Shown one piece after another: positions 4,566-64,000 of a stretch of 64,000 nucleotides of DNA. The notes below the pieces were generated by a model. That model ran no database searches. It worked only from the letters and a program-made list of their open reading frames with translations, and was not told where the DNA came from. The stretch is taken from sequence record OM728297.1; one strand, written 5' to 3'. The translations under genes were made by a program, and so were the position numbers. The stretch's first letter is position 1. Each line of letters opens with the position of its first letter.

Positions 4566-5366
4566 ATGAGTGAAGAAATGACACCAATGGAGGAATATAG
4601 AGGATTATGTAATAGTGAAAGCATTCTAAGTATTTTTGATAGAAACTATAGATTTAGCGTTTCTAGAAATATTAAAGGTTTTAGCTTCACTGAGTCAATT
4701 AGAAATCCCTATGGCAACAATAAGATGAACATCGGATCCCTTTCACAAGATAAAGAAGGCATCATTAATGTTATAGATTATAGTAGATTAGATAAAGAAT
4801 ATAAATTGTCTAATCAAGTGGAATATGAATTCTTTATTAAAGATGTGAGAACTATTAATAAAGATTTTAAACTTTATAAAATATTCTTCTATAATGTTAT
4901 TAGAGAAATGATATGGGAGAGAATAAAGGAAACTCAAACATTTGACGGTTACAAAATCCCAGATAACCTTGAAATTAACTTAGTTGATACAGTTAATTTC
5001 ATGAGTATTGACATTCCTTCAAGAATGGTGAATTTTGATGAGATTCATTATAGTTATGGTAGATTTAATGATTCTATTAGTATTGATTTTGAATTTGCTA
5101 ATAAATATATTGATTTAGATAAATTGATTAATTTAGTTAATTCTGGTATTGAAAATAAAGAGCTAATAGAAATAGAAATGTCTCTACATGCACATAGGAA
5201 CTTTAAAGATAATAGAGATGATTATTTATTTGATCTACCAATATTTATGAATTGCCACTCAGATCCAATAGACCCTAGAGATTCTAAGGAGGATTGGATA
5301 ACAACAATGGCTATATTTAGTAATGAACTATGGGATGGAAATTATGAAAATTTTATAAAAAAATAA
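4566..5366 (+). CDS. Hypothetical protein (paralog of 3798..4547)
   Basis: SD GGGAG; 266 aa ORF. Confidence 0.75.
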   Translation: MSEEMTPMEEYRGLCNSESILSIFDRNYRFSVSRNIKGFSFTESIRNPYGNNKMNIGSLSQDKEGIINVIDYSRLDKEYKLSNQVEYEFFIKDVRTINKDFKLYKIFFYNVIREMIWERIKETQTFDGYKIPDNLEINLVDTVNFMSIDIPSRMVNFDEIHYSYGRFNDSISIDFEFANKYIDLDKLINLVNSGIENKELIEIEMSLHAHRNFKDNRDDYLFDLPIFMNCHSDPIDPRDSKEDWITTMAIFSNELWDGNYENFIKK

Positions 5367-5412
5367 AAGGAGGGAGTGAGTACATACCGTACCCCACTGC
5401 CCTTCTTTTTTT
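5367..5412. terminator. Imperfect hairpin terminator
   Basis: aaaaggaggg...cccttctttt stem with T-tract between convergent genes. Confidence 0.6.
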
Positions 5413-5631
5413 TTATTCTGATTTTTCAAATTCAAATCCAATTAAATCTGATACTCCTAAGTTACCATCTTTACAATTACAAATACTTGTTTTCTCAATT
5501 GGGATACCATTCCATGGTAATGGCTTATCATTTATAAGACCAATTAAAGCTGTTAATCCATCAGGAACATGAGTACTTTTATCCTCTTTATTACATCTCC
5601 TACATTTATAAACTAAGACACCATATTTCAT
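5413..5631 (-). CDS. Small Cys-rich hypothetical protein
   Basis: CRRC and CNC motifs; part of minus-strand cluster. Confidence 0.65.
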   Translation of the reverse strand: MKYGVLVYKCRRCNKEDKSTHVPDGLTALIGLINDKPLPWNGIPIEKTSICNCKDGNLGVSDLIGFEFEKSE

Positions 5632-60581: not shown

Positions 60582-61013
60582 CTATTTAAGCTCTTCTCTA
60601 ACTTTCATGAGAATCTTACCTAATTTATTTTGTCCTTTCCCATTGCATACTCCCCAAGTTGTATCATTCCATGTATTTCCTTCAATTAATTCAAGATTTC
60701 CTGTAGCAATTAATTTTCTTTTGAGTCCTTCATTTTGTGAGAATTTAGCATAAACAATTCTATACATAATATCCTCTTTAATATTCTCCCAATCTGGTCT
60801 TAGACGAACACTACGACCTTTTCTTTTGGCTAGATTTGGAGGAAGAATTGTAAATTGTTTACGAATAAAGCTTGAAGTAACCTTCATAGCTTGAAAGGCG
60901 GCTTCGTTATTATTAAACTCTAAGTCAGCAAATTTTACTTTTGCAGGATAAAAATTACTTAAAAAATAATATTTACCTGAAAAACTATCAATCTTATTCA
61001 TCAACATCCCCAC
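60582..61013 (-). CDS. NADAR (YbiA-like) family protein
   Basis: FLSNFYP, EAAFQAMK, AKRKGR....RPDWE, KF.QN..L...L..TG...LIEGN.W.D..WG, G.N.LGKILM.VR. Confidence 0.92.
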   Translation of the reverse strand: MGMLMNKIDSFSGKYYFLSNFYPAKVKFADLEFNNNEAAFQAMKVTSSFIRKQFTILPPNLAKRKGRSVRLRPDWENIKEDIMYRIVYAKFSQNEGLKRKLIATGNLELIEGNTWNDTTWGVCNGKGQNKLGKILMKVREELK

Positions 61014-61079
61014 CTTAGTTTAATATTCTTCATTTTCATGTTTTTAAATAATTTTTTTAGTTACAAGAATATAAATTAT

Positions 61080-61223
61080 TTAGTATATATCTGCTTGATT
61101 ATATTCTTCAAAATTATCACATTCTTCACATTGTATTACAAGTAATGAACCAGATTCATCATCGTCTACTATAAAACTAATATTGTTTGATCCACATTCA
61201 TCACATCTAATAGTAAAACTCAT
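61080..61223 (-). CDS. Small acidic Zn-ribbon protein (47 aa, not in ORF track)
   Basis: SD GGAG; CDEC...CEEC. Confidence 0.7.
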   Translation of the reverse strand: MSFTIRCDECGSNNISFIVDDDESGSLLVIQCEECDNFEEYNQADIY

Positions 61224-61264
61224 TTAAATCACTCCATTTTTTCTTTTATTTTATTAACTTATTT

Positions 61265-61273
61265 ATAATATAT
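61265..61273 (-). promoter_or_regulatory. Early-type promoter motif ATATATTAT
   Basis: Heads the Zn-ribbon/NADAR/sbcC operon. Confidence 0.65.
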
Positions 61274-61371
61274 TCTTTAATCTTTTTTTATTTTTAGAGA
61301 ATTAATTATAATAAAACAAAATTATAATAAAATAAACCCCTCAATAAAAGCAGAACAATATTGTTTAATTA

Positions 61372-61404
61372 AACCAAGGATATCAAATAATGATATCCTT
61401 GGTT
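61372..61404 (-). terminator. Hairpin terminator
   Basis: 14-bp perfect IR downstream of 61408..62094. Confidence 0.7.
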
Positions 61405-61407
61405 ATT

Positions 61408-62094
61408 TTATTCTTCATCTTCAGTAAATTCTACTACATCATAAATTTTTCCATTTTCATCTCTTGCAATGTATTCCCCATTTTCTTCAATAATTTCTAT
61501 TTGTAGATCCGGTATTTCAGCATCTTCTATAATATTGTAACTACTGTCTAAACAATAGATATTCTTGTCAATATCTACTACATACTGATGCTCATTTACT
61601 TCCTCTATTTGTGTATCTTCTTTTTCAGAATTATTCTCATTTTGTTCTTCTTTTAATCTTGCTTCTAACAATGCATCTATATCTTCTTCATCATTTTTCT
61701 GTGAACCACCAGAAATTTCAGACTCTTTTTTATTTATAATTTCACTAAATTTTTTATCTTTTTTATTATTAAGAATATAATCATGAACACCAGCAACAAT
61801 TTCTCTAATATCAGAGTTATCGCCACCCTCTTGATTTCTTTGATTTTTAAGTGCAATATCAGCTTCAGTTTTCTTAGCATTTACGATTTGCTGAATAATA
61901 GATATCTTACCAGTTTTAAGTGAAATTAAATTAGAGGTTTGTTTTTCTATAAATGTAAGAGTTCCATTACTGCCACTATTTTTAACTTTATCATAATGCT
62001 CTTTTGTTTCATCATATAATTCATCGATTTTTTCTAATTCATTCTGAAGAATACTTAATTCTTTAGAAATATCGATATTAATATTATCAGCCAT
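61408..62094 (-). CDS. Acidic coiled-coil hypothetical protein
   Basis: SD GGAG; late promoter. Confidence 0.7.
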   Translation of the reverse strand: MADNINIDISKELSILQNELEKIDELYDETKEHYDKVKNSGSNGTLTFIEKQTSNLISLKTGKISIIQQIVNAKKTEADIALKNQRNQEGGDNSDIREIVAGVHDYILNNKKDKKFSEIINKKESEISGGSQKNDEEDIDALLEARLKEEQNENNSEKEDTQIEEVNEHQYVVDIDKNIYCLDSSYNIIEDAEIPDLQIEIIEENGEYIARDENGKIYDVVEFTEDEE

Positions 62095-62122
62095 TTTCTA
62101 TCACTCCTATAATATTTAATAC

Positions 62123-62134
62123 TAATATAATGTT
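62123..62134 (-). promoter_or_regulatory. Late-type promoter AACA-N6-TA
   Basis: AACAttatatTA. Confidence 0.65.
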
Positions 62135-62157
62135 CCGTATCAAAAAGATTTTCAAGT

Positions 62158-62166
62158 ATATATTAT
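62158..62166 (+). promoter_or_regulatory. Early-type promoter motif ATATATTAT
   Basis: Directly precedes structured non-coding region. Confidence 0.65.
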
Positions 62167-62487
62167 TACTGTGACGATATCGAAGTAATAGAATTTCGTC
62201 ATAATTCCTACGGTATCATTGTAGGGTAATTTTCTTAGATATTGTTCATTTACACGGACTCAAACATGTGCCCGTAGCTGTAACAATAAGAAACACAAAA
62301 ACTAGTAATAAATAAGGTAATAAAAGAATGGTTGGAAAGACAAAAATATTCATCAGGCTACATACCACGAAAAGTGTATTGAACGAATGACAATACCCAC
62401 CTAGTGATTATAGCAAGATCTTTCACCATTCTCCGTATCCTTATAAAGAGAAAAAGGATTTTTTTAAAATGGAGAGGAGAATACGCT

Positions 62488-62568
62488 ATGACAAACACAG
62501 TTGAGAAAAATGATTGTCTGGGAAAATTCCCTATTGATGCAGTAAGAATTAGAAGTTCTATTATTTAA
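62488..62568 (+). CDS. 26-aa small ORF MTNTVEKNDCLGKFPIDAVRIRSSII
   Basis: SD GAGGAG ~8 nt upstream; lies inside the structured transcript. Confidence 0.4.
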   Translation: MTNTVEKNDCLGKFPIDAVRIRSSII

Positions 62569-62590
62569 ACATATACGACGACTACTTTTA

Positions 62591-62628
62591 CTATGGGTGG
62601 GGGCAACCCCACCCATAGGGCTTTTTTT
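62591..62628 (+). terminator. Strong intrinsic terminator
   Basis: ctatgggtgggg-GCAA-ccccacccatag then ggc and T7. Confidence 0.85.
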
Positions 62629-62677
62629 GGTCAATGTATAACGATTTCGTCAAAATACTTAATGGGGAGGTTTTTGA

Positions 62678-63451
62678 TTGAATTGGTTTAAAAGAATGTT
62701 TATGGCAAAGGAGAAGGATAAGGAAATTGATTCACTAAGAAGGATGGTTGAACAGAGTAATGAAACTATTAAACTCATGGATGGTGTCATAAAAAGATTA
62801 GAGGATAATATGACTAAATCCAGACAAGAATCAGCAGCAACTCTTCAGGAAGAAAAAGAATATCAAGATCAAATGAAATTGGAATCAGAAAGGATGCGGG
62901 AATATGAATATATTCAAAATGCTCAAAAAGTTGTTTCTACTTATTTAACTAAATATCTAGATCGTTTTAATCTAATTGAAAATCGTTTTTCACTTGCTCA
63001 TAATATAGATCTTCTTTCTAATTCTGATGACTTAATGTTTAAAATTGTACAAATGATTAAATTGTCTAAGACCAGTGTTGAATTTGCTACTGTTTGGAAC
63101 AATCATGTTATAAGAATTAGTATTGATAATGATGAAGATGATGTATATTATAGTATTAATGGTGGAAAAAATCTAAGTTCCGACATTGTAGGAACCAAAT
63201 TTCTTACTAAATTTAAGAAGGACATCCAATTAGATATATTAAATTTTCCATGTGTTCAGACAAATAAGATTTACGAAGTAACTGGTAAGAAGTACAAGTA
63301 TGTCTTAGCTAACTCAAGAAGAGAATGTTATTATATACTTAAAGATAAAGAGATGAAAACAAAAATAAAAGAAGTTAGTTTTGTTGAACCAAGTGCATAT
63401 ACACGTTCTATTAGATCTAGATTAGTATATGTAGTGCCTCATCAAACTTAA
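62678..63451 (+). CDS. Hypothetical protein with N-terminal coiled coil
   Basis: TTG start, SD GGGAGG. Confidence 0.75.
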   Translation: MNWFKRMFMAKEKDKEIDSLRRMVEQSNETIKLMDGVIKRLEDNMTKSRQESAATLQEEKEYQDQMKLESERMREYEYIQNAQKVVSTYLTKYLDRFNLIENRFSLAHNIDLLSNSDDLMFKIVQMIKLSKTSVEFATVWNNHVIRISIDNDEDDVYYSINGGKNLSSDIVGTKFLTKFKKDIQLDILNFPCVQTNKIYEVTGKKYKYVLANSRRECYYILKDKEMKTKIKEVSFVEPSAYTRSIRSRLVYVVPHQT

Positions 63452-63458
63452 TGCTTAT

Positions 63459-63499
63459 AAGAGTAAAGTCTTTTATAGACTTTACTCTTTTTTTTTTTG
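63459..63499. terminator. Bidirectional hairpin terminator
   Basis: 13-bp IR plus long T-tract. Confidence 0.75.
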
Positions 63500-63679
63500 T
63501 TAATAACGTTTGATATCTAATAATAAGTATTGATTATTTTTATAAAGAAAATTTGAATATTGTTTTACTTTAAAACCAAATCTTTGTAATAGCCAGCAAG
63601 GGAAAGAAATAATAAACATTAACAAAATTAGTATAATTAACAATAGTCCTTCCAATAAATTTATCTTAAAACCCCACAT
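63500..63679 (-). CDS. Small membrane protein (59 aa, not in ORF track)
   Basis: SD GGAGG; LLEGLLLIILILLMFIISF TM segment. Confidence 0.65.
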   Translation of the reverse strand: MWGFKINLLEGLLLIILILLMFIISFPCWLLQRFGFKVKQYSNFLYKNNQYLLLDIKRY

Positions 63680-63690
63680 AGAAATCCTCC

Positions 63691-64000
63691 TTATTCTCTA
63701 GTTAGAGAATAAATTGCTTGTATTGCTTCATTCCCAATTTGACGAGAGTTTCGTCCCATTTGGTCTAACATATTCTTCTTTTCCCATATTAGTCGTTCTG
63801 CTTCTTCATTAGCTTCTTTACTAAATACTCCACGTAGAGATACTGTATCACCATCATAATCTCCTCCTAATGCTTTTAAATAACCATTATAAGGAATTAC
63901 TGTGTCTACAAACAATTCATCTTCAGCAGGATAGTCAGGATAAACTACAGGATAATCAGGGAGATAACGATCTTCTAATTTTTGTGGCTTAGTTTCTTTT
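63691..64000 (-). CDS. rpoC: RNA polymerase beta' fragment with catalytic motif (probably virion RNAP), 5'-truncated by window edge
   Basis: LGGDYDGD (NADFDGD equivalent); frame is open to base 64000. Confidence 0.88.
   Translation of the reverse strand, partial: KETKPQKLEDRYLPDYPVVYPDYPAEDELFVDTVIPYNGYLKALGGDYDGDTVSLRGVFSKEANEEAERLIWEKKNMLDQMGRNSRQIGNEAIQAIYSLTRE

Follow-up and report, generated by a model that had tools for sequence, protein, structure and literature searches.

Results

An early-type transcription unit in a gap between divergent genes

We analyzed a stretch of 64,000 nucleotides (nt) from sequence record OM728297.1, hereafter the window (one strand, 5' to 3', numbered from its first letter), and within it the 583-nt gap at 62095–62677, which holds a real, conserved and previously undescribed structured RNA unit. 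An earlier reading made from the letters alone (the sequence-only reading) had placed a ~460-nt structured non-coding transcript here, in a gap between genes. The gap is indeed intergenic and is flanked by divergent genes, a homolog of AR9 g142 on the minus strand to the left (61408–62094) and a homolog of AR9 g144 on the plus strand to the right (62678–63451). Positions 62095–62677 are 100% identical to Bacillus phage vB_BsuM-Goe21 and 99–99.5% identical to AR9 and Internexus, and PBS1 also matches except for one internal deletion. Goe21, AR9, Internexus and PBS1 are uracil-DNA jumbo phages of the Takahashivirus group. The genomes of AR9/PBS1-type jumbo phages are transcribed by two RNA polymerases (RNAPs) of their own, and B. 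subtilis 168 is the growth host for Goe21, AR9 and PBS1; to our knowledge, almost nothing is known of RNA-level regulation in such phages. The G+C excess that had been claimed for the gap is present but modest (0.33–0.355 versus 0.23–0.29 directly on either side), and similar values occur in some coding stretches.

The promoter can be judged against 39 mapped AR9 early promoters, which have the consensus a/tATATATTAT followed, after 5–6 nt, by a purine at the start site and frequently accompanied by an upstream CCGTAT[TC]AAAA; this upstream element (ccgtat[tc]aaaa) sits ~25–35 nt upstream of many of the mapped early promoters (Table S2 of PMC5312081). Positions 62135–62173 conform to that pattern. 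An upstream element, CCGTATCAAAA, at 62135–62145 (this and all other features of the unit are on the plus strand) is kept in other lineages; the core of a promoter of the early, virion-RNAP type, TATATATTAT, at 62157–62166 fits the early consensus and is identical in all 11 lineages described below; and 6 nt past the core lies G62173, the transcription start predicted from the Table S2 spacing (PMC5312081). The bare 9-mer ATATATTAT at 62158–62166 is only ~2-fold enriched in the window (15 found versus 8.2 expected), and the call of an early promoter belonging to this unit, already made in the sequence-only reading, is convincing because of the extended context rather than the 9-mer. In AR9, the late promoter and start mapped for g142 (AR9 116648, approximately window 62123; minus strand, region 62100–62150) adjoin the early promoter's upstream element in the opposite orientation, so that divergent promoters of two different phage RNAPs share ~50 base pairs (bp).

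At its other end, the unit is closed by an intrinsic terminator (62591–62628) that consists of a 12-bp stem (62591–62618) with a GCAA loop, a GGC spacer and a run of seven T residues. At −24.3 kcal/mol it ranks first in stability among the 27 terminator-like hairpins of the window, which agrees with its earlier description as the strongest there, and it is not a terminator on the minus strand. Across lineages the stem covaries and the tail TAGGGCTTTTTTT (62619–62628) is nearly invariant. Bacterial intrinsic terminators do not usually have an unpaired spacer such as this GGC between stem and T-tract; it may be a consequence of the phage RNAPs or of additional pairing. We also noted that 62167–62182, which includes the first bases of the RNA, is 81% complementary to 62642–62657, between the terminator and the start of g144; this match, possibly due to chance, would be relevant only on read-through, and position 62642 differs in AR9, PBS1 and Internexus.

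Promoter and terminator thus define, as a sequence feature, a discrete unit of ~456 nt (62173–62628, bounded by the predicted start and the last T of the terminator tract), close to the size first suggested, and the homologous units in the 10 other lineages span 424–519 nt. Only the AR9 record annotates anything in the gap, a minus-strand hypothetical protein, 'g143' (AR9 116988–117140; window 62464–62634), which spans a short open reading frame (ORF) described below and the terminator hairpin. It is not called in Goe21, PBS1 or Internexus and has no counterpart in BpSp, a diverged relative, and the call is probably spurious; published expression values are nonetheless attached to it. In fragments per kilobase per million (FPKM), these values are 39, 531 and 1799 at 5, 20 and 40 min, which is moderate; the 5-min value is typical of early genes, and the neighboring g142 and g144 stand at 0.76 and 0.43 FPKM, respectively, at that time. 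An abundant AR9 non-coding transcript mentioned in the sequence-only reading could not be found, as PMC5312081 mentions none, and the RNA studied here is not among the abundant AR9 transcripts. Neither the AR9 transcriptome paper, the Goe21 paper nor a 2026 jumbo-phage review contains an account of this RNA.

Homologous units in eleven lineages

In DNA searches, BpSp was the sole diverged relative found. DNA pattern scans gave chance matches in GC-rich DNA only among metagenome and genome contigs, and AR9 itself plus one chance match among viral contigs. We obtained further lineages with profiles of the two flanking proteins, whose contigs were then retrieved. The resulting set of 11 lineages comprises Goe21 and ten others (BpSp, which is L003; L007; L008; L019; L022; L023; L024; L025, which equals L026; L027; and L028), with flanking proteins ~37–57% identical to those of Goe21; a set of this size has limited power for covariation. 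All 11 lineages have the promoter, the terminator with TAGGGCTTTTTTT, a Shine-Dalgarno sequence (SD) with a start codon, an ORF of 23–41 codons, and a 5' arm complementary to that ORF.

The module is absent from Listeria phage LPJP1 (L006, 1920–4259) and from L029 (981–3190), both of which lack the RNA as well as g144 and are hence uninformative for structure. In these two, the g142 homolog directly follows the gene for the N-terminal part of RNAP beta'. In the Bacillus-phage clade, the RNA and g144 together are thus an inverted insertion of ~1.4 kb. L027 (366–3154) has a complete RNA, ORF and terminator and no g144 homolog, from which we conclude that the RNA unit is a self-contained module, independent of g144.

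The L027 arrangement bears directly on whether the unit might be a leader-peptide or riboswitch-type attenuator of terminator read-through into the g144 homolog (62678–63451). g144 does follow the terminator in 10 of the 11 lineages, no separate AR9 g144 start site is listed, and late g144 FPKM is ~14% of that of the upstream region; like the ermC, trp and cat leaders, moreover, the unit combines a short ORF, pairing that translation would remodel and a peptide whose sequence is largely unimportant. We nevertheless regard attenuation as very unlikely, given that the downstream gene is missing in one lineage with an intact unit. The ORF stop codon lies ~21 nt from the terminator stem in all lineages, too far for a terminating ribosome to touch it, and in place of the antiterminator or terminator-alternative pairing of the known leaders there are only weak 6-bp complementarities to the terminator, none of them a conserved antiterminator pairing. 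By FPKM, the terminator is ~99% efficient at 5 min.

A long-range duplex joins the 5' end to the end of the reading frame

For the predicted RNA (62173–62628), the minimum free energy (MFE) is −123.4 kcal/mol, with z = −6.3 relative to shuffled sequences, and the transcript is thus highly structured, as had been supposed. The helices emphasized before, however, are not its main structure. The fold is dominated by a duplex between a 5' arm (62175–62241) and a 3' arm (62515–62577) that encloses a central domain, and this duplex, which the sequence-only reading had overlooked in favor of local hairpins, is extended in the MFE structure up to 62282 on the 5' side and back to 62482 on the 3' side. 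Because the 3' arm consists of ORF codons ~10–26 plus 9 nt, the 5' arm is in effect an antisense to the ORF body built into the same molecule.

Several tests support this pairing. In the five lineages tested, the arm–arm duplex gave z-scores of −4.9 to −7.7 against duplexes with a shuffled arm. In an alignment-free test, the best partner of each 5' arm was its own 3' arm in 11 of 11 lineages, with a mean duplex energy of −49.5 kcal/mol for self pairs compared to −20.7 ± 7.5 kcal/mol for non-self pairs, even though the 5' arms of different lineages are just ~59% identical. On a MAFFT alignment, which was not fitted to structure, 92.4% of the cells in a 17-pair arm core were paired compared to 33–53% with partners slid; 11 of the 17 pairs showed double-sided changes, a count that none of 500 shuffles reached, and as many as six pair types occurred at one position. 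In every lineage, the ORF stop codon and the outer end of the duplex, where nucleotides 1–3 of the RNA are paired, are at most ~17 nt apart. Alignment of syntenic relatives, one of the checks proposed in the sequence-only reading, reveals compensatory, double-sided changes in the arms and also in the core and in helix P1, which are described below. The two local hairpins read by eye at the 5' end (62172–62201 and 62207–25) are present in this sequence, but across lineages they lack both conservation and significance (z between −2.9 and +0.8), and we rejected them as conserved metastable structures. The pairing of the inner arm in the MFE structure between a conserved block and the start codon was likewise rejected, as it is not conserved across lineages.

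PBS1 provides a natural deletion of these elements. A 109-nt segment corresponding to 62169–62277, bounded at both ends by a CTGT microhomology, is missing from both independent PBS1 records. The deletion removes the 5' arm, together with the 5' strand of helix H2, helix H3 and most of the 5' strand of helix H4, and retains the promoter, P1, the anti-SD, the SD, the ORF and the terminator.

A conserved junction and a helix that shares nucleotides with an anti-SD

The leader upstream of the ORF is ~315 nt long, and its core contains conserved unpaired blocks and three conserved helices. H2 joins the conserved block TTGTTCATTTACAC (62242–62255) to GTGTATTGAACGA (62374–62386); in RNAalifold, the helix forms between TTGTTCAtttACAC (62242–55) and GTGTAtTGAAC (62374–84). 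It closes the isolated core in the MFE structure of 11 of 11 lineages and covaries, with U-A replaced by C-G in three of them. H3 (62256–62273) is a GG...CC hairpin whose loop and length vary, being longer in L025, L027 and L028 and absent in L019; both closing pairs change from G-C to A-U in 3–4 lineages. H4 pairs GTAGCT (62274–62279) with GGCTAC (62356–62361) and is 98% paired and nearly invariant, which is consistent with pairing but does not prove it; in L019 it reads TAAGCC x GGCTTA by manual alignment. H2, H3 and H4 together form a three-way junction. Its 18 pairs were 92% paired on the MAFFT alignment, compared to 24–42% when slid, and contained 10 double-sided cells, compared to 4.0 ± 1.5 expected, a number reached in 0 of 500 shuffles. 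Forcing H2 and H4 to form costs just 3.9 kcal/mol relative to the MFE. Between the H4 strands, 62280–62324 is an A/C-rich, G-poor linker that is unpaired in predicted folds and variable in sequence, although A-rich in all lineages.

A further helix, P1, pairs AGAATGGTTGGAAAGA (62325–62340) with 62419–62432 and is present in the MFE structure. Its proximal 8 bp are 87.5% paired across lineages with three double-sided changes, a result reached in 3 of 500 shuffles. The P1 3' strand overlaps the sequence ATTCTCC (62428–62434), an anti-SD, and within this stretch (62419–62434) CATTCTCC is invariant in eight lineages. The anti-SD pairs with the SD of the ORF, GGAGAGGAG (62471–62479), which is followed by AAT to 62482 and lies 8 nt upstream of the ATG at 62488; this SD:anti-SD helix is 94.8% paired across lineages. 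The P1 3' strand ends with the ATTC that forms the 5' part of the anti-SD, and the two pairings thus share nucleotides. In L025 and L027, all three partners have changed in concert: the P1 5' strand from AGAATGG to GGAATGG, the anti-SD from ATTCT to ATTCC, and the SD tail from GGAGAAT to GGGGAAT. In L028, G.U pairs connect this site to the P1 5' strand as well as to the SD tail, which compete for it. The concerted three-way change hints, more than any other observation, at a switch between P1 and masking of the SD.

Of the helices read by eye in the sequence-only reading, three held up. Two were recovered in the fold and covary, namely P1 (62325–40/62419–32) and H3 (62254–57/62272–75). The third, gtattg/caatac (62376–81/62391–96), whose 5' half lies in the H2 3' strand, appears in the MFE structure, but it is weak and competes with the better-supported H2; as a conserved alternative to H2 (H5), it is predicted inconsistently at −1.3 to −5.5 kcal/mol, too weak for a switch claim. 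The remaining proposals (62231–36/62288–93, 62241–46/62282–87 and 62437–42/62454–59) were not recovered comparatively.

A short reading frame that is kept open while its product changes

Although the gap contains no long ORF, as first reported, it does contain a conserved one of 26 codons plus stop, MTNTVEKNDCLGKFPIDAVRIRSSII (62488–62568), which has a strong SD and an ATG start and lies inside the 3' arm. This micro-ORF, missed in the sequence-only reading, is unannotated in Goe21, AR9, PBS1 and Internexus, and with an SD, a start codon and a frame of 23–41 codons in 11 of 11 lineages, the transcript cannot simply be called non-coding. The chance that such a frame would be open is 0.04–0.10 per lineage, and SD-to-start spacing is canonical in each. 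The peptide has no match in Pfam or PHROG. A weak motif is shared among lineages, with M-x-[NIT]-T near the N-terminus and L-[GE]-K-[LF]-x-[MVI]-[DE] at approximately residues 12–18, the C-terminal parts being unrelated in sequence; radical changes in the motif (G/E, LG/FP) are mirrored by changes in the 5' arm. For the same genome pairs, the ratio of nonsynonymous to synonymous substitution rates (dN/dS) is 0.44–0.75 for the micro-ORF, compared to 0.09–0.14 for the flanking genes, and dS is depressed (0.38 versus 1.0–1.2). Nucleotide identity in the leader is 0.86, compared to 0.79–0.81 for the flanking genes. A frame that is open everywhere while its amino acids are almost free to change suggests selection on the RNA fold and on translatability rather than on the peptide.

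This pattern of conservation raises the alternative of a purely non-coding functional RNA, acting as a decoy, as a scaffold or as an RNase III-processed precursor that releases the central domain, with the SD and ORF as structural by-products. In its favor, nothing else at the locus is as conserved as the RNA, whose leader exceeds the neighboring genes in identity; the peptide is under almost no constraint; the core combines unpaired blocks that are conserved with a junction or pseudoknot topology; and perfect helices of 14–15 bp in the arms are plausible RNase III substrates, given what is generally known of the B. subtilis enzyme. Structural by-products would hardly be expected, however, to keep a frame of 23–41 codons open in AT-rich sequence in 11 of 11 lineages, at the per-lineage chance given above and with wholly diverged C-terminal parts, to maintain canonical SD–start spacing in every lineage, or to have a stop codon that tracks the end of the duplex. 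A search of the window for trans targets or paralogs returned only short, A-rich chance matches and thus no target. We consider a purely non-coding role rather unlikely. The scaffold for phage RNAP and the decoy or sponge for a host defense or RNA-binding protein that the sequence-only reading offered as possible roles are speculative.

The same fold invites comparison with type I toxin mRNAs, whose architecture is well established for hok, tisB, bsrG and txpA. In hok/mok of plasmid R1, in tisB, zorO and dinQ, and in bsrG, txpA and yonT of B. subtilis prophages, a very short ORF is combined with a long and structured 5' region; the mRNA is locked through pairing of its 5' end with its 3' region, its SD is masked, and the 3' part of the ORF lies in a duplex. 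In silico, the RNA described here likewise has a 5'–3' fold-back with a sequestered SD, and its frame resembles mok, in which the frame must be open and the sequence matters little. A type-I-toxin-like nature would make the product an early host-takeover peptide with its antitoxin RNA fused in cis as the 5' arm, silencing the mRNA, targeting it to RNase III, or both, and the early promoter upstream and the fast evolution of the peptide would suit such an arms-race gene. The peptide itself points elsewhere. In none of the 11 lineages does it have a hydrophobic stretch of transmembrane length; the sequences are hydrophilic or mixed, barely conserved and joined just by the weak motif, and a defined toxic fold would hardly be expected at a dN/dS of ~0.7 with radical changes such as G/E and LG/FP, so a small hydrophobic (membrane) or otherwise toxic product appears to be lacking. 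In contrast to the known systems, in which the antisense is a separate gene, the antisense here is in cis; inspection of the minus strand, which included a manual check for late promoters, revealed neither a separate antisense gene nor a conserved promoter, and AR9 lists no minus-strand start. The locus has no sequence similarity to these toxins and no Rfam match, belongs to a lytic jumbo phage and uses a virion-RNAP promoter, and PBS1 is viable without the putative antitoxin arm. We therefore view a toxin–antitoxin function as unlikely.

No match to known RNA families

Rfam 15 covariance models gave no hits in the window at the gathering threshold, and at E ≤ 10 just trivial hairpin matches (E ~9) in 62000–62750. 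At the corresponding locus in the 10 other lineages, Rfam gave nothing, and no sub-threshold family recurred. The classes covered include riboswitches, T-box, 6S, transfer-messenger RNA (tmRNA), RNase P, GOLLD, ROOL, ribozymes, and type I toxin/antitoxin RNAs. ARAGORN found no transfer RNA (tRNA) or tmRNA genes in 61000–64000. These searches uphold the earlier statement that the element resembles no tRNA, tmRNA, RNase P, T-box or riboswitch. The RNA is similar to GOLLD, ROOL and 6S RNA in size class, phage context and ornate structure, and to 6S RNA in having a long irregular duplex with a central domain, but it matches none of their covariance models at E ≤ 10 and, unlike them, has an SD and an ORF that appears to be translated.

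Neighboring genes

Pfam and PHROGs assign no function to the g142 or g144 homologs. An AlphaFold model of the g144 homolog is confident (predicted local distance difference test score, 86) and shows an 85-residue N-terminal helix followed by an alpha/beta domain; the model has no fold match in the PDB at E < 0.3 and the protein no Pfam family, and the 'Spc97/Spc98' note attached to it in the AR9 record is unsupported. Between g144 and the RNAP beta' gene lies a 59-residue hydrophobic ORF on the minus strand (63500–63679; PHROG 34384, function unassigned), which is annotated in PBS1 and not in Goe21 and for which Pfam and PHROGs gave no function. In the metagenomic relative L019, a group I intron (Rfam RF00028, 75.9 bits) on the minus strand at 5255–5592 lies beside or inside the RNAP beta' gene; the AR9 homolog of this gene, g145, is split by introns with homing endonucleases, and the Goe21 gene is annotated as uninterrupted.

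Discussion

The reading that we favor, and hold to be somewhat probable, is that the locus encodes an early, ~456-nt, self-antisense and translation-gated structured mRNA or dual-function RNA that acts as a self-locking switch. In this model, the RNA would be made at the very start of infection. In silico, its first ~70 nt are a built-in antisense to the ORF body and form with it a panhandle of ~65–80 bp, which closes the RNA from the 5' end as far as the stop codon. While the RNA is closed, the SD would be masked and the 5' end buried in duplex, and the RNA would therefore be translationally silent and protected from decay that depends on the 5' end. A change in the core, for example formation of full P1, which would withdraw ATTC from the anti-SD, could expose the SD. 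A ribosome reading the ORF would then have to unzip the entire panhandle, finishing where the duplex ends, and unzipping would flip the molecule from a form with long double-stranded RNA to an open form with a free 5' arm. As its output, the switch might set the amount or timing of a fast-evolving early micro-peptide or the half-life or RNase III sensitivity of the RNA, or it might let the free 5' arm and core act in trans.

Several observations weigh against the self-locking switch. The analysis brought out no trigger for it. PBS1 is viable without the 5' arm and the junction, which indicates that these parts are dispensable in the laboratory. P1 crosses H2 and H4, so that either a pseudoknot or alternative folds must be assumed; co-evolution of distal P1, as assessed by self and non-self energies, was not discriminating and thus could not be demonstrated; and covariation of the SD:anti-SD helix, which varies too little, was not significant compared to shuffles. 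In BpSp, the peptide motif is kept only in a frame initiated by TTG, and the ATG after the SD opens a different frame. Both ends of the RNA are predictions from the sequence. The AR9 tables list no start site at this promoter (PMC5312081), and the strand on which the AR9 g143 FPKM values were counted is unclear. AR9 has an A>G change at 62160 within the promoter core (TATGTATTAT), which may account for the missing start site in AR9 differential RNA sequencing.

A further difficulty concerns the strand. The minus strand folds almost as well as the plus strand (z = −5.5), and neither G.U versus A.C counts nor plus- and minus-strand duplex energies give a consistent strand bias, so the strand assignment rests on the promoter, the unidirectional terminator, the SD and the ORF. 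Near-symmetry of this kind is what an element acting at the DNA level would display, with the inverted repeat serving as a cruciform, a replication origin, a pac site or a relic like a miniature inverted-repeat transposable element, and with the transcript incidental; the site between divergent genes and the status of the module as an insertion relative to LPJP1 and L029 would also fit. Such an element would leave unexplained the promoter, SD, start codon, open frame, anti-SD, three-way junction and unidirectional terminator, and the repeat is present in a single copy per genome, with one arm deleted in viable PBS1. We judge a DNA-level role highly improbable. Each of the four rivals considered, namely attenuation, a purely non-coding RNA, a type-I-toxin-like gene and a DNA-level element, is less well supported than the self-locking switch.

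A related possibility, which we think quite unlikely, is that the RNA senses translation as such, being open while the ORF is read and forming a ~70-bp double-stranded panhandle when translation stops, or the reverse. If so, the peptide would be irrelevant, and the element would couple the translational or RNase III state of the host to an early decision of the phage; alternatively, the long double-stranded RNA or the structured core would be a decoy for a nucleic-acid sensor or nuclease of the host.

For the self-locking switch, two further groups of regulatory RNAs offer partial precedents. Dual-function RNAs such as S. aureus RNAIII, with its 26-residue hld ORF, and B. subtilis SR1/SR1P are similar in being several hundred nucleotides long, with long-range 5'–3' closure, many helices and a tiny ORF, the translation of which the folded RNA itself restrains. 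They differ in that no trans targets were identified here, the ORF lies in the 3' arm, there is no homology and there is almost no constraint on the peptide. Translational riboswitches and SD-sequestering leaders share the conserved multi-helix core and the design in which a closing helix, P1, has nucleotides in common with the anti-SD that masks the SD, and the concerted three-way covariation seen here is also like them. In contrast to those leaders, the RNA matches no known aptamer class and has no known ligand, and the 26-codon ORF that would be regulated is itself part of the structure.

For annotation, our results indicate that AR9 g143, on the opposite strand, is probably spurious. With PBS1, a natural mutant is already at hand, and compensatory mutagenesis is feasible given how short the predicted switch elements are; the question is thus directly testable. 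For the biology of these phages, the locus adds an undescribed family of structured RNAs of ~450 nt that is better conserved than the neighboring protein genes, and it would represent an unusual design in which an mRNA carries its own antisense across its reading frame, and in which the ORF must be open while its product is nearly free to change.

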